Made by a program: the position numbers and the translations under genes. This document shows, one piece after another, positions 5,011-34,167 of a DNA stretch of 64,000 bases (its first letter is position 1; every line of letters begins with the position of its first letter). Below the pieces are notes generated by a model. That model had not been told where the DNA came from. It ran no database searches and saw nothing but the letters and a program-made list of their open reading frames with translations. This stretch comes from Ylistrum balloti (lineage: Eukaryota): assembly GCF_031769215.1 (NCBI RefSeq), contig NW_026782651.1:186001-250000 (forward strand), in the 5' to 3' direction.

Positions 5011-8000
5011 ATGGCAGCTACGATCCGAAAGGATACGTTCGTGTTATCTGAGTAAGTTGTTTCAATGCCTTGTAATAGTTCATCATTCTTGATACTTTAA
5101 TTAAAGCGTTTAACCTGTACGTTTTCGTTGCTAAGGAAGCTGCAGGTGCCCTTCTTCAGTTTCTGTCTGTTAGTTTTCTATTATCGTGGTGTATATCTAT
5201 TTGTAATGAATTTACATCCTTATATAGTTTCTTGCATTTGAAAAGAGAAAAATAACTCTGCTTAAAGCACGAAATAATGTTGAAGTTTACTCTTTCAAAA
5301 CCATGCACAGTTTGTGCAGAAGTTACACTGTTCATTGTAAATGCTGATTGTGGTGAATTATGTGTAAAATTTGTACACGTATTCATATCTACACGTGTTC
5401 ATCTAACATGAATTTAATCTGAGCTACTGTAAATACCATTATTATTTGCAAATTATAAACTATATCAATTTTGCAATGTAAATACTATTAATTATTTGTT
5501 TCTGTATATTTATATTACATGTTTCTTTGTTTGTGTCGTTAATGTTTTGATGAAAAACCTTTAGTTGCTATATTTCACTTTTTAGCAGCCAGAAAAGTAC
5601 AGACAACATGTCGGGAATAGATAGACAGAATGTGATGAGGCTACGTATAAACAGAATAGCTTTGGTCCAGGAACTGAAGGTTGATCATATCATTGGAGCC
5701 CTCATAGAACAAAACTTACTTAACAATTTTGACCAGAGAAAGATTGCGCATGGTACTACACATGCAGACAAAGCCCGTATTCTCATAGACTTACTGCCCT
5801 CAAAAACAAATGTCCCCGATTGGTACAATATATTTCGTGATGCTATGATGAATCCAGATGCTGGCCCAGAGGTCAGGAAGAGGTATAGGTCTTTGGTGGA
5901 GTTCCTTGATAACACTGTCATCCATCGCCCAACCTCACAAACTGCAAAATTTAGTGAAACAATGGACAAAAGGAGGCTACCTCATTACAATCCAGTACCA
6001 CCCATCATCAAGGACAGTAAGAATCAGTCCAAACCTCAAAATGTCCTCAATCTTGATGAGGAAAGACGTGGGGCTCCTCCAGACCAAGAGATGGAAAAAC
6101 AAACCAAAGACATGATACCAGAACGTGGGGACAAATTGACTCCCTGGAATCAAGACAATCAAGAGTCCATGACCCTTGTCAAAGGGTTTTTCCAGCAATG
6201 GGTGCCAACTCCAGATAACTTCAGATCACTTTTACAGGTAAATCTTAAACATTGTACATTCAAAGTTTTATATCAAATAACAATTGTAAATATATACACG
6301 TACTTTCCGCCATACTTCATTATCAGATTTGCTGTATTTGTCAATTGAGAAATGTTTGTGCTGGATTATCAGGCAAGGAAAGCTGCTGGAAATCATTTTC
6401 TTTCTTGAAAAACTTGAAAGGCAATTGAACCAAAGGCAGTTCAGCTACAGAATTTTGTCTTGTTGTTGACTTCTCAGAAACTTAAACATTATGTATTTAT
6501 ATATTATTAATTACTGTATCTTACTTTATCTAGTATAAAATATGTCTGGTAATAAGCCCACCCATATTTATTGCTGTTGTGTCGAGTTACCATCAGCTAC
6601 TATTTCATTGCCTTGTATTAAGCCCAACCCCTGATTCTGAATAAGAAGTTATTTGTGGTGGTTATTACAGTAAACATATGATAAACAGCTTTTATGTAAT
6701 ATATCTTCATAAAAAGGTTCCTGAGGGTCATTTCCAAGCTCTTCAAGAGTCCAATCACCCTGATGACAAAGCACAGCTTGCCTTAGAGACAAAAGCTTTG
6801 GAGAAAATTAGAAAGTTGGAACTAGTTGCTGTTCTGGGAAGGAGAAAGCAGCTTCCTCAGGGTTTTGAACTCTGCATGTGTGATGTGGTACATGAAATTT
6901 TATTTGACTCTGAAAACTATCACCTTTTTTTCAAATACTTTCGAAACCTTCAAGAATCTGAAGTCCATCTACTCAGTGACATTGTGGATTCTTATTCTTC
7001 TGTAATGCAAGCACTGGATCCATCAAAATCAAGTGATGATACCAAACAGGCAATCAAACTGGGTTATCATCTGATAGACTTCCTTGCTGAGTTTGGATAC
7101 TTCAAGGAAGCAGAGCTCATCATGGCGGTCCTTCTGATTGTTCTAAACCAAACTGACAACATCGAGACATGGATGACCAAATACAAAGGTTTTGTGAAGC
7201 TGATGCGGCTGCGAAATATGAATTATAATTTCAGTGGAACATACACTGCCTATTCAATGGCTACTGAGATGATGTGGAAGATAGATAAGATGTCCTTCGG
7301 AAAGGACCTGATACCAAAGGCAGAGTTATACAACGAGATCTGCCAGATGATGTTAGAGCGTGGATCTGTGAATGCTGCTTTTGGCTGGGCACAGAAAGCT
7401 CTTAAGGTAAAAAAAACAGCTTCCTTCACAATCTTGCATCACATAAATTGATTTTGAATAAATGAACCTTGATGAATATTTTTGGAAACTATTTAACTTA
7501 ACACAGAGTTAAATTGAAATTTAAAGCTTTTAAGCCAAGTCATTTTTTCTAAGCTGTAGTCATGGTTAATTCTCAATTTCACTGGTGGGGTGGAGGGATG
7601 GGAGATTTTTAAATGTTCTTCAATCAGAGGCAAAAGATGTCTCATGTGCATGATTTTTAAATTGTTATATGACCAAGGACATGCCTCTCTTGTGAGATAT
7701 CCCACAGGTTTCCAAAAACTGCAATATTAGCCTGAAACTGGTCAATTCCGACATAAGAGGTACCATTGCCAATAGATAACCTTGACTGAAAAAGTAACAG
7801 GGAATTTCCATGACATGAAGTTATCATCACAAATTGATAACCTAGACTGAAAATGAAGTTATAATATGGACATCTTAAATGCCATGTTATATAACAAAAC
7901 AGGAACTTTTTGTGGCCTCAGTCTCGAGTTAACAAATCCTCATATCAACCTGGACAAAGGTTTGCTAATTGTGTAATGTTGCCTTCATACATTTTGTATT

Positions 8001-11000
8001 TGATTGGTTTATAACATGAAACAAATAAAAAGAATATTGAATTAAATATTGGAGAATTAACGAACGTGTAATGCATTTGATGTCCTTACAGTAGACTTTG
8101 TCTTGATTCTTAATCAGTGATATTTCTGAGCTTAATCTGATACAAATTGTACGAAATATATAAAACTTACATACATTTATTGGTAGGAGGTCCAGTAAGG
8201 CAGTAGAGGCACATCTGCTGTGTACTTTGTACATTCATCAGGAGTTTACACCTGAAAACATTACCCTCAAATTGATTTTTAAATTTATATTTTACATTTC
8301 ATTGGTAAAATATAATGTTTCTATGAGTTTTATTGCAGAAGGACTGATATGTATGATTCTTTGTTTGGTAGGAGGTTGGGGAGACTGACTCTGTGAATGT
8401 TATCAATATCCTATGTACAGCTGTGATAGCCTACTGTTCCAAGTGGCAGGTGAAGCGAGCCGAAACACTGGCCATACAGGTCGTTCAGCAGGCCAGGTGA
8501 GTACTCTGAGTTCCTGATAAATTGTTTGAGTGGATGACCTTTGCTACTGACCTTTTAAACCATCTTGCTAAAATTGAGAAAAAAAAAGGTTTAATAATCC
8601 TCTTTCTAATGAAAACACCAATAAAAATCACTTTATACTCAATATTATTGCCAGTTGTGATGAGTATGTGTACAGCATAAGTTGTTACAGTGTACAAGGT
8701 TCTGTTGTGATGAGTATGTGTACAGCATCAGTTGTTACAGTGTACAAGGTTCTGTTGTGATGAGTATGTGTACAGCATCAGTTGTTACAGTGTACAAGGT
8801 TCTGTTGTGATGAGTATGTGTACAGCATCAGTTGTTACAGTGTACAAGGTTCTGTTGTGATGAGTATGTGTACAGCATCAGTTGTTACAGTGTACAAGGT
8901 TCTGTTGTGATGAGTATGTGTACAGCATCAGTTGTTACAGTGTACAAGGTTCTGTTGTGATGAGTATGTGTACAGCATCAGTTGTTACAGTGTACAAGGT
9001 TCTGTTGTGATGAGTATGTGTACAGCATCAGTTGTTACAGTGTACAAGGTTCTGTTGTGATGAGTATGTGTACAGCATCAGTTGTTACAGTGTACAAGGT
9101 TCTGTTGTGATGAGTATGTGTACAGCATCAGTTGTTACAGTGTACAAGGTTCTGTTGTGATGAGTATGTGTACAGCATCAGTTGTTACAGTGTACAAGGT
9201 TCTGTTGTGATGAGTATGTGTACAGCATCAGTTGTTACAGTGTACAAGGTTCTGTTGTGATGAGTATGTGTACAGCATCAGTTGTTACAGTGTACAAGGT
9301 TCTGTTGTGATGAGTATGTGTACAGCATCAGTTGTTACAGTGTACAAGGTTCTGTTGTGATGAGTATGTGTACAGCATCAGTTGTTACAGTGTACAAGGT
9401 TCTGTTGTGATGAGTATGTGTACAGCATCAGTTGTTACAGTGTACAAGGTTCTGTTGTGATGAGTATGTGTACAGCATCAGTTGTTACAGTGTACAAGGT
9501 TCTGTTGTGATGAGTATGTGTACAGCATCAGTTGTTACAGTGTACAAGGTTCTGTTGTGATGAGTATGTGTACAGCATCAGTTGTTACAATGTACAAGGT
9601 TCTGTTGTGATGAGTATGTGTACAGCATCAGTTGTTACAGTGTACAAGGTTCTGTTGTGATGAGTATGTGTACAACATCAGTTGTTACAGTGTACAAGGT
9701 TCTGTTGTGATGAGTATGTGTACAGCATCAGTTGTTACAGTGTACAAGGTTCTGTTGTGATGAGTATGTGTACAGCATCAGTTGTTACAGTGTACAAGGT
9801 TCTGTTGTGATGAGTATGTGTACAACATCAGTTGTTACAGTGTACAAGGTTCTGTTGTGATGAGTATGTGTACAGCATCAGTTGTTACAATGTACAAGGT
9901 TCTGTTGTGATGAGTATGTGTACAGCATCAGTTGTTACAGTGTGCAAGGTTCTGTTGTGATGAGTATGTGTACAGCATCAGTTGTTACAGTGTGCAAGGT
10001 TCTGTTGTGATGAGTATGTGTACAGCATCAGTTGTTACAGTGTACAAGGTTCTGTTGTGATGGGTATGTGTACAGCATCAGTTGTTACAGTGTACAAGGT
10101 TCTGTTGTGATGAGTATGTGTACAACATCAGTTGTTACAGTGTACAAGGTTCTGTTGTGATGAGTATGTGTACAGCATCAGTTGTTACAGTGTACAAGGT
10201 TCTGTTGTGATGAGTATGTGTACAGCATCAGTTGTTACAGTGTACAAGGTTCTGTTGTGATGAGTATGTGTACAGCATCAGTTGTTACAGTGTACAAGGT
10301 TCTGTTGTGATGAGTATGTGTACAGCATCAGTTGTTACATTGTACAAAGTTCTGTTGTGATTGTGATGAGTATGTGTACAGCATCAGTTGTTACAGTGTA
10401 CAAGGTTCTGTTGTGATGAGTATGTGTACAGCATCAGTTGTTACAGTGTACAAGGTTCTGTTGTGATGAGTATGTGTACAACATCAGTTGTTACAGTGTA
10501 CAAGGTTCTGTTGTGATGAGTATGTGTACAGCATCAGTTGTTACAGTGTACAAGGTTCTGTTGTGATGAGTATGTGTACAGCATCAGTTGTTACAATGTA
10601 CAAGGTTCTGTTGTGATGAGTATGTGTACAGCATCAGTTGTTACAGTGTACAAGGTTCTGTTGTGATGAGTATGTGTACAACATCAGTTGTTACAGTGTA
10701 CAAGGTTCTGTTGTGATGAGTATGTGTACAGCATCAGTTGTTACAGTGTACAAGGTTCTGTTGTGATGAGTATGTGTACAGCATCAGTTGTTACAGTGTA
10801 CAAGGTTCTGTTGTGATGAGTATGTGTACAACATCAGTTGTTACAGTGTACAAGGTTCTGTTGTGATGAGTATGTGTACAGCATCAGTTGTTACAATGTA
10901 CAAGGTTCTGTTGTGATGAGTATGTGTACAGCATCAGTTGTTACAGTGTGCAAGGTTCTGTTGTGATGAGTATGTGTACAGCATCAGTTGTTACAGTGTG

Positions 11001-14000
11001 CAAGGTTCTGTTGTGATGAGTATGTGTACAGCATCAGTTGTTACAGTGTACAAGGTTCTGTTGTGATGGGTATGTGTACAGCATCAGTTGTTACAGTGTA
11101 CAAGGTTCTGTTGTGATGAGTATGTGTACAACATCAGTTGTTACAGTGTACAAGGTTCTGTTGTGATGAGTATGTGTACAGCATCAGTTGTTACAGTGTA
11201 CAAGGTTCTGTTGTGATGAGTATGTGTACAGCATCAGTTGTTACAGTGTACAAGGTTCTGTTGTGATGAGTATGTGTACAGCATCAGTTGTTACAGTGTA
11301 CAAGGTTCTGTTGTGATGAGTATGTGTACAGCATCAGTTGTTACATTGTACAAAGTTCTGTTGTGATTGTGATGAGTATGTGTACAGCATCAGTTGTTAC
11401 AGTGTACAAGGTTCTGTTGTGATGAGTATGTGTACAACATCAGTTGTTACAGTGTACAAGGTTCTGTTGTGATGAGTATGTGTACAACATCAGTTGTTAC
11501 GGTGTACAAGGTTCTGTTGTGATGAGTATGTGTACAGCATCAGTTGTTACGGTGTACAAGGTTCTGTTGTGATGAGTATGTGTACAGCATCAGTTGTTAC
11601 AGTGTACAAGGTTCTGTTGTGATGAGTATGTGTACAGCATCAGTTGTTACAGTGTACAAGGTTCTGTTGTGATGAGTATGTGTACAGCATCAGTTGTTAC
11701 AGTGTGCAAGGTTCTGTTGTGATGAGTATGTGTACAGCATCAGTTGTTACAGTGTACAAGGTTCTGTTGTGATGAGTATGTGTACAGCATCAGTTGTTAC
11801 AGTGTACAAGGTTCTGTTGTGATGAGTATGTGTACAGCATCAGTTGTTACAGTGTACAAGGTTCTGTTGTGATGAGTATGTGTACAGCATCAGTTGTTAC
11901 AGTGTACAAGGTTCTGTTGTGATGAGTATGTGTACAACATCAGTTGTTACAGTGTACAAGGTTCTGTTGTGATGAGTATGTGTACAGCATCAGTTGTTAC
12001 AGTGTACAAGGTTCTGTTGTGATGAGTATGTGTACAGCATCAGTTGTTACAGTGTACAAGGTTCTGTTGTGATGAGTATGTGTACAGCATCAGTTGTTAC
12101 AGTGTACAAGGTTCTGTTGTGATGAGTATGTGTACAACATCAGTTGTTACAGTGTACAAGGTTCTGTTGTGATGAGTATGTGTACAGCATCAGTTGTTAC
12201 AGTGTACAAGGTTCTGTTGTGATGGGTATATGTACAGCATCAGTTATAACAGTGTACAAGGTTCTGTTGTGATGAGTATGTGTACAACATCAGTTGTTAC
12301 AGTGTACAAGGTTCTGTTGTGATGAGTATGTGTACAGCATCAGTTGTTACAGTGTACAAGGTTCTGTTGTGATGAATATGTGTACATCATCAGTTTTTAC
12401 AGTGTACAAGGTTCTGTTGTGATGAGTATGTGTACAACATCAGTTGTTACAGTGTGCAAGGTTCTGTTGTGATGAGTATATGTACAACATCAATTGTTAC
12501 AGTGTACAAGGTTCTGTTGTGATGAGTATGTGTACAGCATCGGTTGTTACAGTGTAGTACAAAGTTCTGTTTACAGATGTATAGATTCAAGAACTACACA
12601 TTTTTTTTAAATTACTATTTTCTTGAAAAATAGCCCTCTATCACCCTGGATCTGTGTATTGATTTGGAGGTAATCAGAGAGAGATATTTTCATCAACCAT
12701 TTAATCGTTTGTTATTTTAAAGACACTTGTTGTAAATGCAAATAATCTTTTTAAATGTTATTATGAAATTGCCTTATATTTTTCTGACCAGAACCACGTT
12801 TGGTCCAAGACACCCAATGTACCTGAAAGCTCTCCTTGCGTTCTGCCATTTCTCAAATGAGTTCAAGCAGGATCAAGCTGGTTTAGATGTGGCTCTGGTG
12901 AATATTTTTACAATGTATATTCAAGAACAAATCAATTTATTAATTAAAATAAATAAATAAATGGATAAAATATGAAGAAAAACTTTTTTTTTAAAATAAT
13001 ATTTTACCCTTCCTGATTGTTAGAACAATAACTTGTCACTTGATTCTAATAAAAATACAAAGTGACCGGGCATAAAAATATACATGAAAAAGGAAAATTT
13101 GGACTGTAATTTAACATGACTTTTTGATTTCAATTACATGTTTTGAGATTTTTATGTTACAGTTAGTATAGTTTCGTTTCTTTAGGTTAATAAAACCATG
13201 TATTGGCCTCATCAAAAGGCTGTAATTGTATAATATCAATTTGTTAGTTGAATAAATCTATGGAGAGCTTCGCTGAATCTTGTGTATAAATCATTTATAT
13301 TTAAATACAAGAGAAACTGATGAAGTGTTGGTGTATATTTTGTATTTGGTTTGTTAATATAGATTTATTGGGTCATATGTATCTTGTAATAACTCCATCT
13401 GACCAACTACTGCCACCTTTCTGTTAGTCAAGTTCTGGATGAAAATAACATTTGTTTGTAATTTTACAGAACAGCAGTAGTTATATGTGGGCATATCATG
13501 TACCAAGCACCAGGAGTCCATTCAATATATCTATAAATATGATATTTTTAATATATTAAGTGAGTGACTCAGGAGTTTCCATGATGATCTGTTATTGAAA
13601 TTTACCCCAAAATCATTAACAAGTTTGAGCAATGTATATATTTACTGACAATAAGCCTAGGGTGTCAACTCACAAGTGTCTTATCTTGTGCGTATAAAAG
13701 CTGGTATTTTCATTTTGAAGAAAATCTAAAAGAAAGCTAATGAATGTTGAATGCAGACGTATGTTCATTTCTTACCAGCATGCATTAGAGGTGGCCCATA
13801 AAATCTATGGCTGTGATATGATCATGACTGCCCTGGCCCATCGAGCTGTTTGTAAGGCTATGCTGGTCCTGCAGAAGTTTGATGACTTCAACTATGATGA
13901 GCATGCAAATGAGGGATTGAGGAAAGCACGGATTCTCCTGCGAGACAACCATCCTATGTTGTATCTTTTCCTCCATACTGCAGGTTAGAATTCTCCATAA

Positions 14001-16726
14001 ATCAACAATGACATCCATATGTCCTGTGACATTTAGGAAATTCAGAAGATCTTGATGTTGTATATTGTATTTTTCATACCTACTACAATATGGAAATCCT
14101 TATGTGCAAGTTTTTGATTCTGATGATTATTTTTATAATTTAGAAATTTCTTGAAATTGAGTGTATCTTTTTTATGTGCAATTTCTTTTGCAATCATTTT
14201 TATCAGTTAAAAAGTTATGGTCTGAATTTAAAAAAAAAAGAAAAATCACTTCAAAGCACTAACATAGATGTGTTGGAAATTGATTCATCCCCGTTACTTC
14301 AAGGAAGCGACATATTTCAATTATGTACATTATCTTATGCATTTCCCATTCTGATTGACAAGTTGATAATTTCCAGGAAAATGAAATAACTCTTTATGAG
14401 CTTATTTTTTACAAACAAGTGAAAATTTCAACGTTTTTAAAAGTTTTTACAAATTTCTAAAAAGTGGTCAACCTTTTATTTTGACTAGAATTAAGTGATG
14501 CGTAAATTATCTTTAACTTACTGATAACACCTGCATTCACTTTTCATTTATTTTCCATTAAATATAATTTTTGTCCAATTATAGCCACAGCTCTCCAGTG
14601 GAAAGCCCTTCACTCTTCGAAGGACATGATGAGTGCGACATTGACATTAGCCGAAACAGAGGCAAAGATTGCTATCGGTATAGTTGAAGAATATTACGGC
14701 GATATTAGTGTGAGGGCTGCCCAAATGTATTCCCTTCTCGGGCAGATCTATTCCAAGATGGATAGGTATGCTGCACTTTATGATTGTATCCATTTTTCTG
14801 CTTTCATGGAAAGGCTTTAATGATATTTGTACAAAGATTATGTGAGGATCAAGTTATTTTATGAAGTGAAATTTTAGCATGTATAGGAACCATCTTCTTA
14901 GATAGCCAAGATCAGTAGCCACCTACTGTTTTTCCAGAGAAGTAAATAGGTGGTAACTCTTTGCCAGGGATGGTCAATGCTTGCATTATGCTTGTTCACA
15001 AGTCAAATTCAAATCCTAATTACAAAGTCTGTAGATTGATCAATCACCTTGTTTAGTAAGCATGTTCAAATTTTAGAGGAGAGGAGGATCAGTGTTTGTG
15101 AGAGCCAATTTTTAAGTGATTAAAAACCTGAAATGATTTCTCTATATCTAGCTATATGTATTTAAAAGTCCATCGCTCTCTGGTCTCTGGTGTTATTGTC
15201 TAGACTACAGGATGCTATGGAAATGATTTCTCTATATTTTTACCTGTATATTTCATCAGCCATTGTTTTCTGTTGTTGTTTTGTAGACTACAGGATGCTG
15301 ACAAAATTATTTCTAAATATTTACCTGTATATTTCATCAGCCATTGTTTTCTGTTGTTGTTTTGTAGACTACAGGATGCTGAGAAAATTATTTCTAAATA
15401 TTTACCTGTATATTTCATCAGCCACTGTTTTCTGTTGTTGTTTTGTAGACTACAGGATGCTGACAAAATTATTTCTAAATATTTACCTGTATATTTCATC
15501 AGCCATTGTTTTCTGTTGTTGTTTTGTAGACTACAGGATGCTGAGAAAATTATTTCTAAATATTTACCTGTATATTTCATCAGCCATTGTTTTCTGTTGT
15601 TGTTTTGTAGACTACAGGATGCTGACAAAATTATTTCTAAATATTTACCTGTATATTTCATCAGCCATTGTTTTCTGTTGTTGTTTTGTAGACTACAGGA
15701 TGCTGAGAAAATTATTTCTAAATATTTACCTGTATATTTCATCAGCCATTGTTTTCTGTTGTTGTTTTGTAGACTACAGGATGCTGACAAAATTATTTCT
15801 AAATATTTACCTGTATATTTCATCAGCCATTGTTTTCTGTTGTTGTTTTGTAGACTACAGGATGCTGACAAAATTATTTCTAAATATTTACCTGTATATT
15901 TCATCAGCCATTGTTTTCTGTTGTTGTTTTGTAGACTACAGGATGCTGAGAAAATGCTCTATAAGAGTGCTATGTGCTTCAAGATTTGTCTGAATCCCAA
16001 CAGCAACTTCCGCTTGCTGTCTATGGCTACCCTTGGTACTTTCTATAAGATCTTTGACAAGCCAAAGGAAGCTATCCTCATGTTCAATGACGTCATCACA
16101 AATTTAGGTATTTACAGAATTATATATATATACAATATATACACCTCAAGAAACAGGCTTTATTTGATTCTTTAATAATTTTAGGAAAACTCAAAAAATA
16201 CTTTTTATTGTTTGTCAGTTTTGAATAGAATTATCTGTAGACATCATATTTTTGTCTTTGTGTTTTATTTACGATCAACAGACTTCTGGCATAATTTTTG
16301 AAATACACATAAGAGTACTAGTGAACCCTGTAAGATATTGAAACGTGTCATTATCATCTTATTACAGTTCTTCTATTGTCTCTAATTGTTAACTGGTTTG
16401 ATCTGTTTTCCATTTTAATGAATTAATAAATGATTTAATTCCATTTCTGCTGAACAGAACCCTGTGGTGTATATCTGAAATGGGTTCATGTGTGCTTTGA
16501 GCACCTGATAAGCACACTCCAGTCAATCAACATGAACAAGGAGGCTGACGAGGTCCAGATCAAACTGTCACAGTGGCTGCGGGACCATCCTGTCTATGAG
16601 AGAGTGATCAGTGTTGAAGATCTGCAACAGAAAGCACAGCCTTTCTCTCGCTTCATGGAGGAGTTTGATATCTGGGAAAAACATACAAAGAAGATTTTGG
16701 CGGCAGTATTAAAGAAGGATAAATGA
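5011..16726 (+). CDS. CARD-like death-fold domain plus APPBP2-like TPR protein (~813 aa, 9 exons)
   Basis: Exons 5011-5051, 5586-6237, 6717-7406, 8372-8496, 12792-12897, 13779-13983, 14585-14765, 15935-16107 and 16458-16726. All are GT-AG with consistent phases and total 2442 nt. The N-terminal RLRINRIALVQELKVDHIIGALIEQNLL...DKARILIDLLPSK is CARD-like. The C-terminal segments (LGYHLIDFLAEFGYFKEAE; KAELYNEICQMMLERGSVNAAFGWAQKALKE; TFGPRHPMYLKALL; YYGDISVRAAQMYSLLGQIYSKM) follow, in order, the segments I recall from APPBP2. Confidence 0.85.
8654..12572. repeat. 50-bp tandem repeat (~78 copies) in intron 4 of the CARD-TPR gene
   Basis: Unit gttctgttgtgatgagtatgtgtacagcatcagttgttacagtgtacaag, nearly invariant. 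Variant marks recur at a 1006-bp period. Confidence 0.97.
15204..15955 (+). repeat. 81-bp tandem repeat spanning the intron 7 / exon 8 boundary of the CARD-TPR gene
   Basis: The junction ttttgtag|actacaggatgctga recurs at 15287, 15368, 15449, 15530, 15611, 15692, 15773, 15854 and 15935, with a diverged copy at 15204. Only the last is followed by unique exon sequence. Confidence 0.95.
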
Positions 16727-19862: not shown

Positions 19863-20215
19863 TCACAAAATGCCAAGAAAACGGTGCCCCTTAGATTTTA
19901 ATGCCGACGTCCCCCGAATCGTTGGCACCATGGAGATGTCCCAAACCCGTTCTCCAGCACCACATCCAACCAACGCTTGGTCACGTCCGTGACTGTTGCC
20001 ATGGAGATGTACCATGGCCCTCCAAGACGAGTTGGTAGATTTGTTATCAGACGGGACGGTGATAGCGAATTGGTAAAGACCACGACTAGGACATGTAAAC
20101 TGTCCTCCACTAACATCGTTACCTCCTCCTTGGCTGACTTCGACGTGGTTTACTTTCACCGAGTGTCCGTTTTCTACACTGTAAGTGAGTTGAAGTGGAA
20201 TTCAAAGCCGATGAT
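19863..20215 (-). pseudogene. Degenerate C1q-domain copy (C1qDC-1)
   Basis: IGFEFHF (one frameshift) ...VNHVEVSQGGGNDVSGGQFTCPSRGLYQFAITV...VGCGAGERVW...FLGIL aligns with the neighbouring C1q exons (IGFDA, FTCPQHGIYQFA, CRVGQQVW, FSGHL). No matching upstream exons were confidently found. Confidence 0.6.
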
Positions 20216-22283
20216 ATAGTTAGACGCTTTTCGGCCCGCTTATGATTTATAATAAACAAGCATGTCATATTGCATTCCAGTGTTTTCAAGGTTTAACCGT
20301 TAACCAATATTTAATTGCAATATCACTTAATTATTTTCCAAAATAATTGACATGCACGTTTTAAAAGAAAACAAAATACCAACACAACTTCTCGGTTTCG
20401 TTTTGCTTTTTTTAAGGTAGTTCATCTATAGCACGAACTGCGTTTTGCAAGGCTTGTAAAAATCCTAAAATCTTGTATAAAATAAAAACTCATTACAGAT
20501 CCTATATATGTCACAGTAGGGTTGGTAATGTGCTGTGTATAACATAAATGTATTAACCTGTGAAAGTATGGTGTCATGGGTACACTACAGCAGACAAACA
20601 GAATGCTAGATTTATTTCCTTGTTTTTTACTTATCATATCTTATTGTTCCCATTTAAGGACAAGCCAGTAATATGTTATCGGTAGGTGCATGTATAAGCC
20701 GTGCCGTATCTGTTCGGCCCGTTTAGAACGTGACTTTCTCACTTCTATTTCCGGTGGTAAAGCGGAATTAACTTGAATACTTCGATTTCAAAGTAATGGT
20801 CGTCCAGATTCAACGACTCCTATCTGACTTCCGTAACCTTTGACCTATTTTGAGTTTCTGAATCTCGATCACTAGGGTTTGACGAGTGTTTTCCTTGTCT
20901 ACTTGTCAATATTTTTGTTTCATGTCAGAATTTCCTAATACTAATTAAAATACATTAACTTTTTCCTGGCAATGTAGTTATATTCTGTAATCAGAGGAAA
21001 TGTAAGGGACTGTTAATGACACTTGCCGAGTCATAGATACGGTGATCGACAAACTTGCTGTTCTATTAGACGAATTTCAATAATCTCGGTAAAGATTAAC
21101 ATATTTCAAATCAAATCTAAATTTGTATTAGACATTCAAATGTATGGATAGTATAAATATAAGCAAGTATCTAGCTCAATGTATTTATAGTCGTTATAAA
21201 TGACAAATTGTTGACGACAAGCATGCCGTATTGTACTACAAGCGCTGTATAATATCTGCCTGCTTAGCTGTAGTGTAATGGTTGTCTTAAGCATTAGTTC
21301 CTTCTCTGGAGACAGATCTGTCCTTGTTCTTACCGAGTTTGTATCTCACTGCACTATGACAATTAAGTTAAAGTTATCAAAAATGCATAAATTTCCGTTG
21401 TACTATCAGCATTATCTTTCTATTGTGTACAATTGTACATTGTAATCAGTAAACATCCAACATATTGGTCTTTTCAGTTACTTTTATTGCATGCATATCA
21501 ATACACTGTGTCCTTTAGTACCACAACAGCTAGCCTCTGGCTAAGTTAGCCAAATTACTAGAAATATTTAAACAATGAACTGAAGGGCGCCATTCTATTT
21601 GTCGTCCAGCCGGATTGGCTTCATATCTGCAGTATACACCATGTGGTAACAGTTTATATATATTTCGATCCTCTCAGTAAGTAAAGACATTTTGTTTGTG
21701 ACAGATTCTACCTTTGTAATGTGGACTGTCAGATCGACGTCAACTGTAGCAGACGAAGTTGACAAACTTGGTAATCGAGTGTGCAATTGCGGTTATAATG
21801 CTTTTGTGGTAAAATTACGTATTTGACAATGTTCTGCAATGATTTTATAGCTTTGTAAAGTTACTCTTTTTGTGAAGGCCTTCTTTAAGTCCACATGTCA
21901 GCACACTGTATATTGACACCGAAATGAAAGTGACCGGCGGCCAGTTTTGTTTACCTAGGAGACACTGACCGAATCACTAGAAATTGTAGGATGCTGTCTC
22001 ATATACTACAATAGGTACAGTAATGATATATAGGCAAATACAACACAGAATGTTAAATATTCATATCTACCAGGATTACTTTGTGCGGGACAACTAATCT
22101 TGACCATCGAATATGTATTTATACAATTGACCAGATGGGCGTTCATAACCTGATACACTCCCATCTGGTTTACCTAGAATTAAAACGATAAACTGGTGAC
22201 AGAACAGAAATACGTATATAGTATGCTTTAAATTATGGCCCGATCAACATATAAGTAAGTAGATAGACCATTAGCGAATATCT

Positions 22284-23888
22284 TTATTGCATTGATGCTG
22301 TAAGGTGACCACTGAAACTTGGGGAAGGTTTAGCTGCGGCGAGGGTAGCGTTGTCACTTGCTCCATGAAGATGACGGATCTATACCTGTTGTCCGACACG
22401 ACACTCGACTACCACTACTTGTGTCGCCTGGTCGAAACCTGGCGAGTTGGCTTGGAGACGGCCAATTTGAATGGTGTCCATGGCCATTTCACTGTCTAAG
22501 GTACCACCCAGTTTGGACGAAACGGTTGAGGCAAACTGGAAAATGCCATGTTGTGGACACGTGAACCGGCCGTTCGTGACATTGTAGCCAGCACCTTGGT
22601 TGGTGTGAATGTGATTGAAGATAACTGTCTCCTGGTCGCTAAGTTGGACGTTTGGGCCGTATATCTGGGCATCAAAACCGATGTTTGGATCAGCCGCTCT
22701 TCTAAATGGTAGTACGAGGGATAAATAACTGAAGGAACAGCACTGGAACATTTTTTTTAAATTTGAAATTGGAGTTGACATTGCGATGATGTTAGTCATT
22801 AAACATATATATAACTGGCTTAGATCTACTGAACTATATTTTGCTTTAATATCTAATTCGCTGAGGCATCAGGAATTAGCCATTGGCGCCTGATGTTTAT
22901 AAACAAAGTTTTAACCTTTAACCAAAGAGTAGAGGATCCCCATTGTGATCAATTAAAATGACAACAACCGGTGTATTTTGTAAACATTTCAACATGCTTT
23001 TTCAAAAGGAGTTTGCAATATATCATGAAAACTCTCAACTGTATTATATTGCGTCTTTGAATCTGTTGTTGCTATATATGATAAGTTTTTATTACATAAT
23101 TTACATACATTTAAAGGGTTTTTAAATCGCTCGATATTTTAATGATACTCTGTCCTGCCTTTTTCTATGTCCATCGTTGTATCATCTTGGAGATCGTGAG
23201 CTCGAACCGTTAGTTTTTCCAATTGATCTTCATTAGTGTAAGTAGAAAAAACCACATCGGTAGAGTCTCAAGCAGGACTGGAGAGGACAACGGGACAGAG
23301 ACAGACAAAAGTCATACACGTCCCTTAGTATTGTCAGTAGTGTAAAGAATTTTCTCTTTTGTGTAGTGGATTTCAAAATTTTAGACTAGGAACAAGGTAA
23401 CATTGACATTTTTCGGTTGGAAATCACAGACTGGTGTTTTAGACAATCCAATTATAACTTAATATTTGGATAGATGTTCTGAAGTGCTGATTTTCCCCAG
23501 TGAATTTTGAGCATCAGAAAGATTTTTTTTCTGCCTTAAAACTTTCAACGTTTGATAAACTAAATATTTCTTATGTATCACAGTTGTGAAAACTATCTCC
23601 TCAAAACCTTAGACAAAAATGATGGAATAGCAAAACAGCTGATTATACGAAGAATAGGTCTACATTTTTGTGAGATATTTTAAATATTTACATTTCAAGT
23701 TTTTTTATTTGTACAAAAGGAATTCACAAAAGCCCCCCAATAAATTAGAAATATACATCATTGTGAAGGCACTTGATATAATGAAAAATTAATTACTCTC
23801 CAAGCCGTGTGTGTATTTTATCATCTGCGGTCAGTTGTCCGAGTACACATATTGTGTAAACCAGACCGTAGGTGAAAGAGGACGCCAT
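22284..23888 (-). pseudogene. C1qDC-2 pseudogene (signal peptide, coiled coil and C1q exons)
   Basis: Exon 1 23888-23801 (MASSFTYGLVYTICVLGQLTADDKIHTRL) has its donor changed from gtgagt to gagagt. Exon 2 ~23279-23159 has a frameshift and a GC donor. The C1q exon ~22715-22284 has TGG->TAG at 22382-22380 (GQQV*IRHLHG). Confidence 0.85.
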
Positions 23889-24923
23889 GTTGGTCTTCAC
23901 AAATATAATGTGTAAACTCACTATGAAGAATGTTATCTGTCAATGGGGCGAAGTAGGAGAGCATTGCATAAACTCGGACAAGATAAACCACTCTGTTATT
24001 CCATAACAGTATTCATTTATTCATTGTTCTTTGAGTTTCCATATCTCAGTACAGAATACTTAACAAGGTACTGCCATTTTTTTTATCGTTATCCAAAATC
24101 ATGTGTTTACATATAGGAATCATATAACATAGAATATAAATATAACACAAATAGTTTCTGCTTACTTCTTTTGTGGTTTTCTGAGGATTTTTAAAATTTT
24201 CGTTTGAAGGCCTATGCTATGTAAAAATGTATGTGATAACCTTTTGACGTGATAAATTTGAATGAGTTGTTTCGAAATTGTTGAATGATACATCAACTTT
24301 ATCGTAATATTTGTTTATTTGATGTCTTTTTAAAACAAGTTTTAGTTTTTGTAGTCTCTTCGACTTGACTCGATCCTCAGACAACGTAGAGAACACCAAA
24401 AGTCAACAAATCGTAGCTTAAACTCACTGATTAAAGTAAGGTAAGATATACCCCTGAATGGGGAGAATAAGACCATTTCTCGTGTTTTTAAGTTTTAAGA
24501 AAGTAAATATTCACTGATTCAACATGATAATATCTTCGTGGATTCCATATTTGACACGAAACACTATAACCCGGTATATGGACAGGTGACCTCAGGTTAA
24601 GTTCACATAGAGCAATGCACATCGATGTCAACAATTAAACAATGACATTTCAACAGAGTATTTGTTTAAACTCCAAACCGATGAAACCAAGGCAGCATTT
24701 GACCAAACGACAGATTTCGCTGTAATTTTTTATTAAAAAAAACAATAAAAGCAAAATAAGGTCAGGAATCCGAAAACGTAAAACGTCTTCTGTAGCGTCG
24801 TCATATAGGTCAATTAGGGTATGTAATGTCAAGCTCTCAAAATGAGAGCCAGGTCAACCACAACGACACCAAAACAAATCACAAGTAACATAATACTGAT
24901 CAGCAGCAGATGTTTATTTACAT

Positions 24924-27900
24924 TTATAATAGATTTACAAGATGGCCGCTGAAACTTGGAAACTCTCTCTTTCCACCAAGGAGAATGGTGCCATTAGCTC
25001 CGTGGAGTTGACGGACCCATACTTGTTGTCCAACCTGGCATTCTAACACCACTACCTGCGTCGCCTGGTCCAAACCAGGCGGGTTGGCATGGAAACGTCC
25101 AACTTGAACGAAGTCCATGACCATTTCACAGTCTATAGTATCATTAGATTTGGACGGAATAGTGGAGGCAAATTGGTAGATCCCGTGTTGTGGACACGTG
25201 AAGCGGCCATTACTGACATTGTACCCTGCACCTTGGTTGGTCTGAATGTGGTGGAAGATTACTGTCTGTTGGTCTTGAAGTTGGGTATTTGGTCTAGCCA
25301 CCCGCGCATCAAAACCGATGTCTGGACCAGTTACACGTCTCACTAGCATGAAAAGAGACAACAGTGCAAGAAAGTCTTGGAATAGATAATGAAAGATATT
25401 CAAATTAATAGAAAGACGCAGTTTGGTATTAGTGTTTGTTGTTGTTTGGCAACTGGCACAATTTAGGCAACAAATTGAAATCAGCAAAGTGCTGACCCTT
25501 GTAATTTCTAAATATTGCGAAATCTTTATTGCTTCTACGATTCGATTGACTTATGTGTTGACATAACTCAACATTGTAATGAGATGTAAAAATAAATTGA
25601 AAAAAAAACATACAGTATTGATTAATAGCGCTTATTCATCTCACCTTTGACTTTTGACATAACTTTGAATTCATTAGATGTGCAAATGAAAAGTATGCAA
25701 TATTGATTGATAATGGTGACTTATTTGACCTGTGACCTTTGATGACATAAAGACATATACACATACCTTTGACATAACTTTACATTTTAATGAGACATGT
25801 AATTGAAAGCATATATTATTGACACTGCTGGTAGACTTTAAGTCCCCGGAGTTTGCTTCATCCTGCATGCCACGTTTTAATTCATTCGAATAGGGGCACG
25901 GTTCAGAATATACACATGTACTTGACGCTGTTCTAAAATTATCTGATGAATGAAAGTTACGAAATCTGTTAATTCTGGGACTGTTGTATCACCCTGTCTA
26001 TATTTTGACTTTTCTTTCTATCACTTTGGATTTTCCTCAGTAGCCTCCTAGGCTTCTAACTTTCAAGCATTAGGCCTCCCTTAACATAATGAGTCCTAGT
26101 AGTATGTATATTTGTTACACAATTTTAATTATATAAAATTGACATCCATTGATTACCAATATACCAGTGTCCTTTATAGACTTTTAAAATGCTATTTTTA
26201 ACCCCCATGTAAAACGACTGAATTCTGCTAGTTTTCATATATTGGAGTTTTTCTCTTTCTTTGGAGGAATATTGATATCATCACTTCTGTTTATGTCATA
26301 ATCCTCCCTTGCCTTATCCCCATATTCGTCTGTCTTATCCTCTCTTATATCAGGTCGATTGTCCCATTCTGACATACCTTACCTGGTGTCCATAACTTGT
26401 CACTACGGCTATACGGTATGGAAATGGAAAGATTGGTTTTAACATTAACAAGAATTTATGGATTTTGGTGACTACCTATTGACCTGTATCATACACCTGC
26501 TGTGTAATCATGTGTGGAATTAAATAATTTGATATGCAACCTCCAATGACATATAAAGCTGTGCGAATTAAATGCCATTGCAATATCCACAGCCAATACT
26601 AGTACCAGGATCATAGGAATGGATGTTACGGAGATCTTTACAACAATCAAGAGTAGGCAGGAAAGAAATGATTGATTTATCACACTAAGTATCTGTTTTC
26701 TTATGTAATTATTGCCCGATCTATCGGTCACGTGATTCCGACCGTTTATCCCTATAGGCTCCTTGTTTCCTTTGCGATTCCATGGATCTGACCCTGGAAA
26801 TCGTCAAATCAATTGTATGTTTTTTGGTGCAGAACAAGGATATTTGGTTAGAGGGGTGCATTTTTAAGAACTGTTTTCTGAAATTGTGTCCTGCCCCCAT
26901 CTATTCCCCGGATCTGTAAATGGCTAAGTTTACTCGACGTCCTGAACACTTGTGCTTGCTGTACTTTATGATTTTATGACGAGTCCTACCTCTTTCATTT
27001 TCCAGACTTGCATCAAGTTTGTCTGCTCGAAGCTTGATATCTTCCAGCTGAATTTCATTAGCGTGAGCAGAATAGTCCACATTAGCTGCCAAAGTCTCCA
27101 GAAAGGCTAAAGTTTACATAAAACAACAGAGATACACAACAAGTTACAGGCCATCATATGAGTTGATTTCAGTTTTATTTATTTATGTATTGGTATTGGA
27201 ATAACACATTTTTCATCCATTTTTTTCAATATTCTAAGTACATATAGTTCAATAAGATTGGAAATCTCTTGTTTGCAGTTGCACATAGAATAATTTGTAT
27301 GAAATCTCTTGTTTGCAGTTGCACATAGAATAATTTGTATGCTCAAAGTCTATATATTAATCATAAACTATAAAAAACAGCCTTGACAGAATATGATTTA
27401 GATAAACAAAACAATATCAGAGAATCATTTCCTACACAGCATGATATTGCAGGTTCTACATCAGTTCTAAAACATGTCATCTACAGAGTAACTGTAGACA
27501 CTCAAATTTCAAAAACAAAACCATAATAGTACAGTATGTTAGGTAAGCTTGATTAATACAGTTTGTGGTATCTCAAACCTTATGTGGAAAGTGCAAATGA
27601 GGCATAAGTGGTTTTTCGAACATCTGTAATTATATGGCAGTAAAAATCTATATTATAGGAATTTGAAATGCAGATTTGATTTGTAAGAAATGATAGACAG
27701 GATATTTAATCATTTTCCGTTTATTATCATTGATATTTCACAGTATGACTGAATTTCTATATTTCATAAGCGTGAAAAATGAAGATGTGTTATATTATAC
27801 AAGTAAAATATCTCTGATATTTACATGTAACAGGAACCCATTACTGTTCTTTTCTTCATCTTCTGATGTAATCATGTACATGTGCAAGAATGGATTACAA

Positions 27901-28298
27901 TTATTGTATATGCTATATTATACAAAAGTGGAATGAAGTTATCATGTCCCTTGTGAAAACAGTTGATAAGAGTATTTTTTTATCTCTGTTTTATGTATAG
28001 GTTTTTGTACTCGGCACGTTTCAATTTAACATTATGTGACGTCACAAGAAATCCTGACGTCATCATATGCATGACAAATTGGAAGCACGTCTGTAGAATA
28101 TTTCTGTCTTTGCAATCGCAGTTGTAATGTGTCATCTAATACATTTCAATTAAATATAATATAGATATAAAAAGTTTGGGCGTATATTGCTATGGTTTGC
28201 TCACCAATACGATTGTCGATATCATCTGCTGCTGTCAGCTGTCCATAGCCGAGAATGAATACAGTATAAATTATGCCGAACGTCACAAAGAACGCCAT
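24924..28298 (-). CDS. C1qDC-3: secreted C1q-domain protein (signal peptide, coiled coil, gC1q), 209 aa, intact
   Basis: Exons 28298-28205 (MAFFVTFGIIYTVFILGYGQLTAADDIDNRI), 27106-26990 (AFLETLAANVDYSAHANEIQLEDIKLR...) and 25342-24924 (VRRVTGPDIGFDARV...FTCPQHGIYQFASTI...FSGHLVNLL). Introns are phase 1 and GT-AG; total 630 nt. Confidence 0.85.
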
Positions 28299-29137
28299 GT
28301 TTGTCTGCATAAGATTGATATGTTTACTTGGCGAAACTATCAAGAAGGCTTATCTATATAATCTGTAATGTGTGCGCGCATTGTATGGAATAAGAGAAGA
28401 TAAAGGCATACCAAAGATAGCTAGGTACTGTTACCGTATTGTCTACCAAACGTCTTCGATATTTGTATGTTAACATAAACCAGAAATATAACTTACCACG
28501 GTGTGTTTAAACTTTATATCTATTGGTTGATGGAGGTTAAACATCGAGTGTATAATGTATATTGTACATACAAAATGGGTTTTTAATTTATTAAGACCCG
28601 AGCATTTACGAGTTTGTTTTTTTGTTTTGTTTTTTTTGTTTTTTTTTTTTTCTTGTTTGTTTGAAAATTATGGGTTACTTTTTCTGTCACCACTGTGATT
28701 TCATTGAGAAATCTATCTCTATTTCTTCATGCGATATGAAACTGGGCGTGTTTGATACTCGTTAGTTAATTTGTTGGTTCCATTTTTTATACCTTGTCCT
28801 TATTTCAGAACGTGACATTACTTTCTTGGAGTGTCAAAGATTTGCATGACGGGGATCGTCGTAAATCTTTCTTTTCTTCCTATTTTGCCCTTGTTTTATT
28901 GAATTAGAGTTTGGATTATGCTTATGCTGACAAGTTGACATTTTCTTTTTGTACTTGTTTGTGAAAATGCCACGCTTATATGAAACATATGTCTTTGATC
29001 GATTGATTAGGAACAGCACAATCCATGTTTCTCCAGTATACATGTTGCATTTAGCACCAAGTACAACAGGTATTACCAAATATTCTGACTCGGTCAACAC
29101 AAAATAAAACAAGAAACTGGTTACAGGACAGGTTTTA

Positions 29138-32100
29138 TTACATTAGAGATATAAGATGACCACTAAAACTTGGGAGATAAGTGACTCCAATGAGGGTAGC
29201 AGTGTCGTTAGCCCTATGGAGATGACGGATCCATACCTGTTGTCCGACTCGACACTCAACTACCACTACTTGTGTTGCCTGGTCAACGCCCTTTGTGTTT
29301 GCATGAAGGCGTCCAATCTGGATCCTATCCCTGACCATTTCACAGTCTATGGTACCTAACGCTTTGGATGGAATACTAGTAGTCGAGGCAAACTGATATA
29401 TTCCATGTTGTGGACACGTGAAGCGGCCGGTCGTGACATTGTACCCTGCACCTTGGTTGGTCTGTACGTGGTTGAAGATTACTGTCTGATGATCAGTAAG
29501 TTGGAATTTAGCACCGTGAAATCGAGCATCGAAACCAATATTTGGAACAGCTTGTTGTTTCGCTAGTGATAAAAACCGGTAGGACATACAATGAACAAAA
29601 ACTGAAATTGAATTATCAGAAATAAGAATGCGACATATCTTGAAACAATGACCTTCTTAACAAGACAGAAACATTTAAGTTAAGTGACGAATTTGAAATC
29701 AATACGAAGGAAACCATTACTTTAAATAGCTTTTATATCGTTGACAATAAGGTATCTCGTAGCTTATGTCTACGTTGGTCATCTTGTTCAAGAACAAATA
29801 CGTTAGTTACGTCCTATACAAAATACATGGTCCTGAAACTAGGACTTTTCCACAAACATGAAGCCATTTGTTCAAAGTTATATTGTTAAACGTATCGCTA
29901 TTAAATTTTACAACAGATCGACTGACTCGGATTCAATAAATTGCATGATGTCATTATTTGGCTTTCTTGTGGCTTATACAAAATTGAAATGAAAATGTAC
30001 TACCTTCTTATGTGCCTATTAGGAATTATTTGCAAGAGGAAGACCAGTATCTCTCTATATATCTTTTAGTTTGCAAAATGAATGATTTGCATTTGTTAAA
30101 ACATCAGTTAATTTACTCATTTGTGATGATGTTTTCAGTAAGGCACAATGTATATCTACTGGTTATAAACAAACCTTATCATTCATAAATACCAATTAAT
30201 TAAAATGAATTAGTTTGTAGTATGATAAATGACTTCATTACGTTGCCCCTTCAGGACAATTTTTTCCGAACCTTTTTTTTCGAGGAAGTCTATACTGCTT
30301 TTTGTTGTTTTTTTAATAATGCATCCATTTAAACTTTTACCGTAGATTATGCTAACCAATTTTACCCTTTACTCCATCCAGCCTTGAACTACCTTGCAAT
30401 GTATGTGCTCGTAGCTTCAGTTTTTCCAGCCAAACTTCATTAGAGTTAGTGGAAGATATAACGTTAGCTGCCAATTTCTCAAGATCACCTAAAGTAGATC
30501 AATAGTAAAATAGATCAATAGTAAAATAAATCAATAGTAAATAGATCAATGGTAAAGTAAATCAATTGTAAAATAAATCAATAGTAAAATATATCAATAG
30601 TAAAATAGATCAATAGTAAAATAGATCAATAGTAAATAAATCAATAGTAAAATAAATCAATAGTAAAATAAATCAATAGTAAAATAGATCAATAGTAAAA
30701 TAAATCAATAGTAAAATATATCAATAGTAAAATAGATCAATAGTAAAATAAATCAATAGTAAAATATATCAATAGTAAAATAGATCAATAGTAAAATAAA
30801 TCAATAGTAAAATAGATCAATAGTAAATAAATCAATAGTAAAATAAATCAATAGTAAAATATATCAATAGTAAAATATATCAATAGTTAAATAGATCAAT
30901 AGTAAAATAGATCAATAGTAAAATAAATCAATAGTAAAATAAATCAATAGTAAAATAGATCAATAGTAAAATAAATCAATAGTAAAATATATCAATAGTA
31001 AAATAGATCAATAGTAAAATAAATCAATAGTAAAATATATCAACAGTAAAATAGATCAATAGTAAATAGATCAATAGTAAATAGATCAATAGTAAAACAG
31101 ATCAATAGTAAAATAGATCAATAGTAAATAAATCAATAGTAAAATAAATCAATAGTAAAATAGATCAATAGTAAATAGATCAATAGTAAATAGATCAATA
31201 GTAAAATAGATCAATAGTAAAATAGATCAATAGTAAATAAATCAATAGTAAATAGATCAATGGTAAAGTAAATCAATTGTAAAATAAATCAATAGTAAAA
31301 TATATCAATAGTAAAATAGATCAATAGTAAAATAAATCAATAGTAAAATAGATCAATAGTAAATAAATCAATAGTAAAATAAATCAATAGTAAAATATAT
31401 CAATAGTAAAATATATCAATAGTAAAATAGATCAATAGTAAAATAGATCAATAGTAAAATAAATCAATAGTAAAATAAATCAATAGTAAAATAGATCAAT
31501 AGTAAAATAAATCAATAGTAAAATATATCAATAGTAAAATAGATCAATAGTAAAATAAATCAATAGTAAAATATATCAACAGTAAAATAGATCAATAGTA
31601 AATAGATCAATAGTAAATAGATCAATAGTAAAACAGATCAATAGTAAAATAGATCAATAGTAAATAAATCAATAGTAAAATAAATCAATAGTAAAATAGA
31701 TCAATAGTAAATAGATCAATAGTAAATAGATCAATAGTAAAATAGATCAATAGTAAAATAGATCAATAGTAAAATATATCAATAGTAAATAAATCAATAG
31801 TAAATAGATCAATAGTAAATAGATCAATAGTAAAATAGATCAATAGTAAAATAGATCAATAGTAAATAAATCAATAGTAAAATATATCAATAGTAAAATA
31901 GATCAATAGTAAATAGATCAATAGTAAATAAATCAATAGTAAATAGATCAATAGTAAAATAGATCAATAGTAAAATAAATCAATAGTAAAATATATCAAT
32001 AGTAAAATATATCAATAGTAAATAAATCAATAGTAAATAGATCAATAGTAAATAGATCAATAGTAAAATAGATCAATAGTAAAATAGATCAATAGTAAAT

Positions 32101-33136: not shown

Positions 33137-34167
33137 GTTTACGTACAAACGTTATATATATGTTGATGTTACTTATCTTTGTATATCCGGTGTTTGTGTC
33201 GCATACACCGTCAGACAAGATAAATATGACATCGTCAAGTATTACTGCTAAACTAAAACCCTTTTATTTCATTTCGATATTTTGAATCACACCTTTGAAC
33301 ACATATTCAGTAAATAGAATAGCGAATAATGAAATGTTGTAAAAGTAGTCATAAACCATAGACCGTTCTATAAATTCTATTATATATGCTTATCACATCA
33401 AGCAATATAATGAAATTTTAACCAAAAAAACAAACTTTAGGTAAATAAGATGAAAAATCAAACGGAAGGCGTTGAATTATTAATGGGGAATTACAGGTTT
33501 GCATTCACACGATTAATAAATGTCGGACCTCGTTATTTCGAAGTCGGCGGGCGCGTAGGGAAAATTATTCGATTAAACGACGTCGAAAATTAGGTGTGAA
33601 GTTCGGCCGGGACTTCGAGTTCGAGACAAGACAAGAACCAGTGTAATGTTATTAATGAGGAGACAGGTAACAATACGATCTATCTAACACGCTGGAAAGA
33701 GAAATACTATGTCAATGTTAAATTGTTTATATAAATAACATTGGAATATAGGATTTCTGCAATGTTTGACAAGAGGTCGTGTTTAGATCGTAGAACTTCA
33801 CCTTAAGTTTGTACAGGTTGTTTGGGCAGTAATTCTAAAGAGGAAATATCACTGGATTTAATTTATTGTTCTAAATGAAAATAATAATTTACGAACTTCG
33901 TGACAAAATGTTACTGCCAATTGCAAATTGCGAAGCCTGTTTGTGTTATCGGGTGTTTATTCCAAGTAACTTGTTAAAACGAAATAACAGTTCACATTCA
34001 TATTTCCCTACAGACAAAATAGTTAGTTCCGACATTAGTTTGGAGTACAGTGTACAGCGAGTTGCATTTTCAGAGGATGTAAGATCGGATGGTATCACTT
34101 AAACAAGAAGTACGTCGATATTAATCTCTTCGCAGAAACCTAGAACCGTAATGAACATCGTTTTGTT

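Follow-up and report, generated by a model that had tools for sequence, protein, structure and literature searches.

The window analysed in this study is a stretch of 64,000 nucleotides from the saucer scallop Ylistrum balloti (NCBI RefSeq assembly GCF_031769215.1, contig NW_026782651.1, positions 186,001 to 250,000 of the forward strand), and all positions below are counted from its first letter. Its plus strand carries, between 5011 and 16726, one gene of nine exons and 813 codons that encodes a CARD followed by a solenoid of the APPBP2 type. The gene and the family that it represents are referred to here as CARD-APPBP2L. Long tandem repeats occupy parts of introns 4 and 7, and exons encoding C1q domains lie downstream on the opposite strand. 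Judged by the sequence comparisons below, CARD-APPBP2L appears to be an old family of APPBP2 paralogues whose named members are all spiralian, and in which the residues used by APPBP2 for ligase assembly and degron recognition have been exchanged for another conserved set.

Structure of the gene

Exon borders were read from the splice sites in the sequence, and each exon was anchored by tblastn with proteins of the family. All introns are of the GT-AG type with fitting phases, and the exons sum to 2442 nt, or 813 amino acids (aa), with 0 internal stops in the local translation. The 813-aa, nine-exon model of the first-pass annotation was reproduced exactly. All exons are on the plus strand. 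Exon 1 (5011-5051) starts with the ATG at 5011 and supplies the first 13.7 codons (MAATIRKDTFVLS..) up to the donor GA/GTAAGT at 5051/5052; it is matched by tblastn to residues 1-14 of a family protein and is identical to the N-terminus of the RefSeq protein XP_060082100.1. Exon 2 (5586-6237) encodes the CARD (approximately 5650-5925), a disordered linker, a beta-hairpin, and the start of the APPBP2-homologous region. Exon 3 (6717-7406) contributes 230 aa, which comprise helices equivalent to the VHL box and the earliest TPRs of the solenoid; an exhaustive representative search with this exon returned 64 matches. The exons after exon 3 are all collinear with the family proteins by tblastn. Exon 4 (8372-8496; EVGETDSVNVINILCTAV...VVQQA) is matched with E-values down to 8e-8 and with 50% identity to the protein of the annelid Owenia, and exon 5 (12792-12897; ..TTFGPRHPMYLKALLAFCHFSNEFKQDQAGLDVAL) is matched with an E-value of 5e-10 and has a splice phase that fits exon 4. 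They are followed by exon 6 (13779-13983), exon 7 (14585-14765), exon 8 (15935-16107), and exon 9 (16458-16726), the last of which encodes the final TPRs and the C-terminal helices and closes with a TGA stop. A frameshift or pseudogene near 12723-12800 was considered and rejected, because the splice phases agreed once exon 4 (8372-8496) had been located by tblastn.

The local translation equals XP_060082100.1 ("amyloid protein-binding protein 2-like", Ylistrum balloti) except for a single Ser. This mismatch arises from the choice of AG in a tandem NAGNAG acceptor of exon 2 (5584-5589, ttttAG/cAG/), where splicing to 5586 yields the 813-aa protein and splicing to 5589 the 812-aa RefSeq form. 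Remote searches and structure predictions used single exons or database proteins, and the joined 813-aa translation was compared locally; XP_060082100.1 and an 88%-identical orthologue from Argopecten served as stand-ins for whole-protein work.

Strong, though indirect, evidence places the CARD and the solenoid in one transcript, since more than 35 species share the architecture, an oyster open reading frame (ORF) spans both parts, the homology to APPBP2 starts inside the CARD exon (at the W-x-P / S-L motif described below), and the coding sequence is under constraint. In oyster, Logan contigs of ~3 kb, the size of a cDNA, carry in two runs a single uninterrupted ORF of 797 aa with both the CARD and the TPRs, and comparable contigs exist for other species. 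The constraint was read from a second individual, whose sequencing run must be of DNA because its depth is even across introns, and which was used as polymorphism data only. Exons 2-3 differ there by 3 coding single-nucleotide polymorphisms (SNPs) in 1.3 kb (2 synonymous, 1 Leu>Phe), compared with 23 SNPs and 4 indels in 2.4 kb of the flanking non-coding DNA.

The same observations bear on the possibility that annotation has merged a small CARD gene with an APPBP2-like gene, or that the locus is a decaying pseudogene. Such a reading could appeal to the large minisatellites in the introns and to the fact that transcript continuity in Ylistrum itself is drawn from the RefSeq model and from other species. 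Nevertheless, the frame is open across nine exons, the architecture recurs end to end in more than 35 species of five phyla, cDNA-size contigs hold one two-domain ORF, APPBP2 homology begins in the CARD exon, and coding diversity lies below that of the flanks. A merged gene or pseudogene is already contradicted by these findings, and we regard it as extremely improbable.

The CARD and the linker

Exon 2 matches the Pfam CARD profile PF00619 with an E-value of 7.8e-11 and 42.3 bits (cut-off 23.9), and XP_060082100.1 scores 40.3 bits against the same profile. With 25 homologues as input, AlphaFold2 models exon 2 at a predicted local distance difference test (pLDDT) score of 85.9 as a six-helix bundle, in which a kinked first helix (H3-14/H16-22) is followed by five more helices. 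When this model was submitted to Foldseek, the top 50 matches were all CARDs, led by those of Apaf-1, RAIDD, and caspase-9. The Apaf-1 CARD structures are matched with template modelling (TM) scores of up to 0.89 and root-mean-square deviations (rmsd) of 1.6-2.2 Å, for instance a TM score of 0.86 and an rmsd of 2.0 Å for 1cy5 and an rmsd of 1.6 Å for 8xqk. The best sequence matches in the PDB are weak and again fall on Apaf-1, RAIDD, and caspase-9. The N-terminal domain, described as CARD-like in the first-pass annotation, is a true death-fold CARD.

The scallop protein thus shares with Apaf-1, caspase-9, and RAIDD (CRADD) a Pfam CARD, for which these three provide the best structural and the best, though weak, sequence matches. 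It differs from them in having neither NB-ARC and WD40 regions, nor a protease domain, nor a death domain; behind its CARD come an additional conserved segment (LVEFLDNTVIHRP) and a TPR solenoid. Conservation within the family peaks in the CARD, where the mean majority-residue share reaches 0.67 as compared with 0.40 in the linker, and this speaks for a specific CARD partner.

The ~80 residues after the CARD are disordered in the AlphaFold2 model. They nevertheless contain a motif, (L/F)PxYxP(L/V)PxI, that is strongly conserved in the family and reads LPHYNPVPPII in the window protein, where alignments of the family and codon mapping place it (as LPxYxPxPxI) at 5977-6009 on the plus strand. 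Two of its residues, P151 and I153 in the numbering of the Argopecten orthologue, are invariant in an alignment of 27 family sequences. The LPxY-like character of this motif makes it a possible docking site of the WW/SH3 type.

The APPBP2-type solenoid

The remainder of the protein is related to APPBP2 over its whole length. Exon 3 alone retrieves human APPBP2 from the PDB (8jar/8jaq/8jal) with an E-value of 3e-12 over residues 55-234 (phmmer). Alignment of a profile of 27 CARD-family members with a profile of 28 canonical APPBP2 proteins by hhalign gives a probability of 100, an E-value of 2e-42, and 526 aligned columns with 24% identity. For the Argopecten orthologue the AlphaFold2 model has a pLDDT of 81.6, and Foldseek matches it to the cryo-electron microscopy structure of APPBP2 (8JAL) with an E-value of 4e-19, the next fold following at 3e-7. 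Superposition by VIA places model residues 205-798 on residues 17-579 of the 8JAL chain with a Z score of 43.4 and an rmsd of 3.9 Å over 538/573 residues, and the next fold after APPBP2 is that of LGN, with a Z score of 23.9. Two TPR profiles are matched by XP_060082100.1, namely TPR_12 (40.1 bits, cut-off 30.1) and TPR_10 (30.1 bits, cut-off 27.5). Pfam searches with the later exons taken singly gave no match at the curated cut-off; the homology to APPBP2 is evident from the PDB sequence search, the profiles, and the folds.

The similarity reaches the extreme N-terminus of APPBP2, where the canonical EW(V/I)P(D/E)SL corresponds to QWVPTPDNFRSL at the 3′ end of the CARD exon. This W-x-P / S-L start of the APPBP2-homologous region was located at 6199-6231 of the plus strand by alignments of the family and codon mapping. 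The proposal made at first pass, that exons 3-9 are collinear with APPBP2, therefore holds and can be extended, as the homology is of whole length and already begins at the end of exon 2. With APPBP2 (PAT1; 8JAL, 8JAQ, 8JAR) the protein has in common the superhelix of 11 TPRs, the deep inner groove, and the N-terminal W-x-P motif. It departs from APPBP2 in ~210 extra N-terminal residues, which are the CARD and the linker, and in being only ~24% identical to it, whereas canonical proteins from birds to molluscs are ~60% identical to one another. The anatomy shown by these comparisons is a CARD of the Apaf-1/caspase-9 type, a disordered linker, and a complete TPR superhelix of the APPBP2 type.

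A paralogue beside canonical APPBP2

A search with a canonical APPBP2 fragment, which itself scores 610 bits to human APPBP2, located a CARD-less protein in the same species (XP_060071001.1, 579 aa) that is ~60% identical to vertebrate-type APPBP2. Whether a canonical APPBP2 exists separately had been raised at first pass, and it does. CARD-less forms of 575-596 aa coexist with the CARD form in Ylistrum, Pecten, Argopecten, Mytilus, Mya, and Solemya, and likewise in Lottia, Gigantopelta, Littorina, Physella, Aplysia, Lingula, and Tubulanus. A quick-search maximum-likelihood tree was computed for the shared domain (51 rows, without outgroup), and in it the CARD forms all lie beyond one very long branch with a support of 100. 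The CARD form is a paralogue of APPBP2 and not its orthologue, because a separate canonical APPBP2 occurs in the same species and because the tree divides the two at this support. Branching inside the CARD group and inside the canonical group each follows the species phylogeny. In this tree without outgroup, the CARD clade attaches at the unresolved bilaterian base of the canonical tree, outside the spiralian canonical group.

Named members come from more than 35 species of 5 phyla (mollusc, annelid, brachiopod, nemertean, and flatworm). None of the named matches lies outside Spiralia, many further matches in Logan, ENA, and JGI being without an organism name. Identity to the window protein is 91% in Pecten maximus, 90% in Mizuhopecten, 88% in Argopecten, and 58% in Mytilus; it is 50-56% in clams and oyster, 40-48% in gastropods, 38% in both Owenia and the brachiopod Lingula, and 31% in the nemertean Tubulanus. 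The model of the flatworm Macrostomum lignano has the CARD and part of the solenoid. The data show vertical inheritance at roughly one gene per species, beside canonical APPBP2.

Two members depart from the common form. The Macrostomum lignano model also carries, at its C-terminal end, a Ras/Roc GTPase domain (E 6e-48 for Pfam Ras) and is either a merged model or a further fusion. Argopecten irradians has two near-identical CARD-APPBP2-like copies on one contig, one of them labelled LOW QUALITY by NCBI, and the second copy is possibly a recent tandem duplicate or an assembly haplotig.

In a reading outside death and immunity altogether, the protein would be a scaffold that continues a role reported for APPBP2/PAT1 apart from degrons, that of a kinesin-light-chain-like adaptor for cargo or microtubules, with the CARD serving for oligomerization or docking only. 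The gene behaves like a housekeeping gene across phyla, being single-copy and slowly changing, and not like an expanded immune family; moreover, repeats of the TPR_12 (kinesin-light-chain) type are detected, and the TPRs of KLC1/2 and LGN are the next-best structural matches. However, the CARD is the part of the protein that has been conserved best. To our knowledge, CARDs occur almost only in death and innate-immune signalling, which also speaks against a scaffold of this kind, and we consider it unlikely.

Replacement of the CRL2 and degron signatures

In the structure of APPBP2 bound in the cullin-2/elongin BC ubiquitin ligase (CRL2), the N-terminal VHL box binds elongin BC and Cul2, and a Zn site of Cys54 and His89 creates the APPBP2 dimer (PMC10614623). 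The R-x-x-G degron is held in the groove of TPR6-11 by Tyr345, Arg380, Glu387/388, Arg437, Ser441, Glu469, Ser479, Tyr483, and Tyr515 (PMC10614623). Each of these ten groove residues is invariant in 28/28 canonical APPBP2 proteins, from birds to arthropods and molluscs, and 0/10 are kept in the CARD family. Tyr345 is replaced by Phe in 17/27 sequences (F572 of the window protein, in exon 6). The counterparts encoded by exon 7 are Gln for Arg380 (25/27; Q611), Gln for Arg437 (22/27; Q660), and Lys for Ser441 (24/27; K664), and the same exon has a 7-residue deletion, common to the family and the window protein, that takes out Glu387 and Glu388, the two acidic residues by which the Arg of the degron is held. 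In exon 8, Glu469 gives way to Tyr or Phe (25/27; F692) and Ser479 to Thr (24/27; T702). Tyr483 falls in a gap in both the family and the window protein, and Tyr515 is exchanged for Val or Met (V736, in exon 9). The replacement residues are themselves strongly conserved across the CARD family; the groove would thus still be functional, with another ligand bound.

The docking signatures are altered as well. In canonical proteins the BC box S-L-Y-N-T-A-x-S-A-V has Leu in 28/28 and Ala, Ser, or Thr at position 6 in 28/28. The CARD family keeps the S-L dipeptide, yet 22/27 members have Pro at position 6, and AlphaFold2 does not model the segment as a helix. The comparison was made at the level of the motif, with (S/T/P)-L-x-x-x-(C/S/A)-x-x-x-hydrophobic as the consensus. 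The Cul2 box LP(E/D)N(V/I)QFD (canonically LPENVQFD) is replaced by L(E/K/Q)K(I/M)(R/K)KLE, in which Pro37 is exchanged, Phe42 becomes Leu, and Asp43 becomes Glu. Of the two Zn ligands of the dimer, Cys54 is Pro in 27/27 and His89 is Ser or Ala.

Another motif, LPQGFELCMC (6852-6880), is near-invariant in the CARD family, with its Leu and Pro present in 27/27, and it aligns with the canonical RLCQLGxEF, the site of the Zn-dimer Cys54. Its two conserved Cys might constitute a different metal or contact site.

These residues bear directly on whether the protein is a CARD-tagged substrate receptor of CRL2. Such a receptor would dock on elongin BC/cullin-2 through its TPR part and sense C-terminal degrons, and its CARD would either deliver CARD proteins, e.g. 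caspases, for ubiquitination or relay degron binding to CARD signalling. Consistent with it are the identity of the fold over the whole length of APPBP2, counterparts of the VHL-box helices included (205-798 on 17-579 by VIA), the common W-x-P motif with S-L at the BC-box position, and the conservation of groove positions in the family, which makes some peptide-binding role likely. However, Pro at position 6 of a non-helical BC-box segment contrasts with Ala, Ser, or Thr in every canonical protein, the Cul2 box and both Zn ligands are replaced, and the R-x-x-G pocket has lost all ten residues, including the acidic pair for the degron Arg. Because the CRL2 and degron residues are replaced, the coupling of degron sensing or ubiquitination to CARD signalling that was suggested in the first-pass annotation finds no support, and a CRL2 receptor seems improbable to us.

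Intron repeats and neighbouring genes

Most of intron 4 is filled by a non-coding minisatellite (8654-12556) with a 50-bp unit in ~78 copies (97% matches, Tandem Repeats Finder (TRF) score 7397). It has a strong GC skew of 0.3-0.4 and gives rise to spurious ORFs of 42 aa by the dozen. The last part of intron 7 holds an 81-bp variable-number tandem repeat (VNTR; 15186-15955, TRF 9.5 copies, 96% matches), which copies the 3′ splice acceptor together with the first ~20 nt of exon 8. Its upstream copies are in frame, at 27 aa each, and the family-collinear RefSeq protein proceeds from the last copy only.

A tandem cluster of C1q-domain-containing (C1qDC) genes lies directly downstream of the CARD-APPBP2L gene. 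Its five C1q-domain exons are on the minus strand of window 19863-36462, at 19863-20159, 22380-22799, 24924-25487, 29138-29587, and 36187-36462, with Pfam C1q E-values from 1.8e-4 to 9e-19. The first-pass annotation was correct in placing the gene beside this cluster; the adjacency of C1q as a sign of function is not borne out, as it provides no evidence of function.

Discussion

The architecture encoded at this locus is real and phylogenetically old, and it is not new to the databases. It had been put forward at first pass as possibly undescribed; however, the gene is XP_060082100.1, and the combination of a CARD with an APPBP2-like part appears in automatic annotations from dozens of molluscs and from one annelid, one brachiopod, and one nemertean. 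The architecture must count as already widely annotated, an outcome named at first pass as one that would refute the proposal, since RefSeq and UniProt list dozens of species, whether as 'amyloid protein-binding protein 2-like', as 'CARD domain-containing protein', or as 'uncharacterized'. No paper on the CARD plus APPBP2-like architecture was found among open-access papers and bioRxiv preprints. What is new here is the paralogy beside canonical APPBP2, the exchange of the CRL2 and degron signatures for another conserved set, and an adaptor hypothesis that can be tested.

We favour, and hold to be rather probable, a reading in which CARD-APPBP2L is an enzyme-free adaptor that pairs its CARD with a peptide-binding solenoid put to a new use. 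The inner groove of the solenoid would bind a ligand, which most likely is an extended peptide or the tail of a protein and not an R-x-x-G end, and the protein would no longer dock on elongin BC/cullin-2. Binding of the ligand, or self-association, would gather the CARDs, and the gathered CARDs could then recruit a CARD-bearing partner through homotypic CARD-CARD contact. The likeliest partner would be an initiator caspase of the caspase-2/9 type, followed by a CARD kinase or adaptor. Through these steps CARD-APPBP2L would connect an intracellular cue to cell-death or innate-immune signalling. Such a protein resembles RAIDD, BCL10, CARD9/CARMA, MAVS, and ASC in the use of a CARD for homotypic recruitment along with a second interaction module and no catalytic domain. 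We know of none among these, however, that has a TPR or APPBP2-type solenoid.

Several points weigh against the adaptor. The mechanism is deduced from domain logic, and the loss of elongin BC and Cul2 binding is judged from consensus motifs. The S-L dipeptide and the helices equivalent to the VHL box remain, so that a degenerate BC box is possible. The dependence of transcript continuity in Ylistrum on the RefSeq model and on other species, noted above, counts here too.

A more specific role can be imagined for the adaptor in molluscs, in which no CARD-bearing Apaf-1 had been reported as of 2017 (PMC5550854). The Apaf-1 homologues of molluscs are reported to be without a CARD. CARD-APPBP2L, with an Apaf-1-like CARD on an oligomerizing, ligand-gated TPR solenoid, would be the missing CARD platform for the activation of initiator caspases in molluscs and perhaps more widely in spiralians. 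This link is speculative because the family exists in other phyla too, some of which may have a normal Apaf-1; the adaptor does not require a missing CARD, and we consider the platform role quite doubtful.

The practical value of these findings is modest, as RefSeq and UniProt already contain the sequences, although the names given there say little or mislead. Their biological meaning lies in the history of the family. APPBP2 is among the most conserved C-degron receptors of animals, and a duplicate of it has kept the fold, swapped every known functional signature, gained a CARD, and been retained at roughly one gene per species in at least 5 spiralian phyla. CARD-APPBP2L may therefore illustrate cleanly how, in nature, the substrate receptor of an E3 ligase can be turned into the sensing or scaffolding part of a death-fold adaptor. 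For molluscs, in which no Apaf-1 with a CARD has been found (PMC5550854), the family is in addition a concrete candidate for the engagement of CARD caspases. If the platform idea is true, a hub of death or immune signalling would have been made from a former ubiquitin-ligase receptor.

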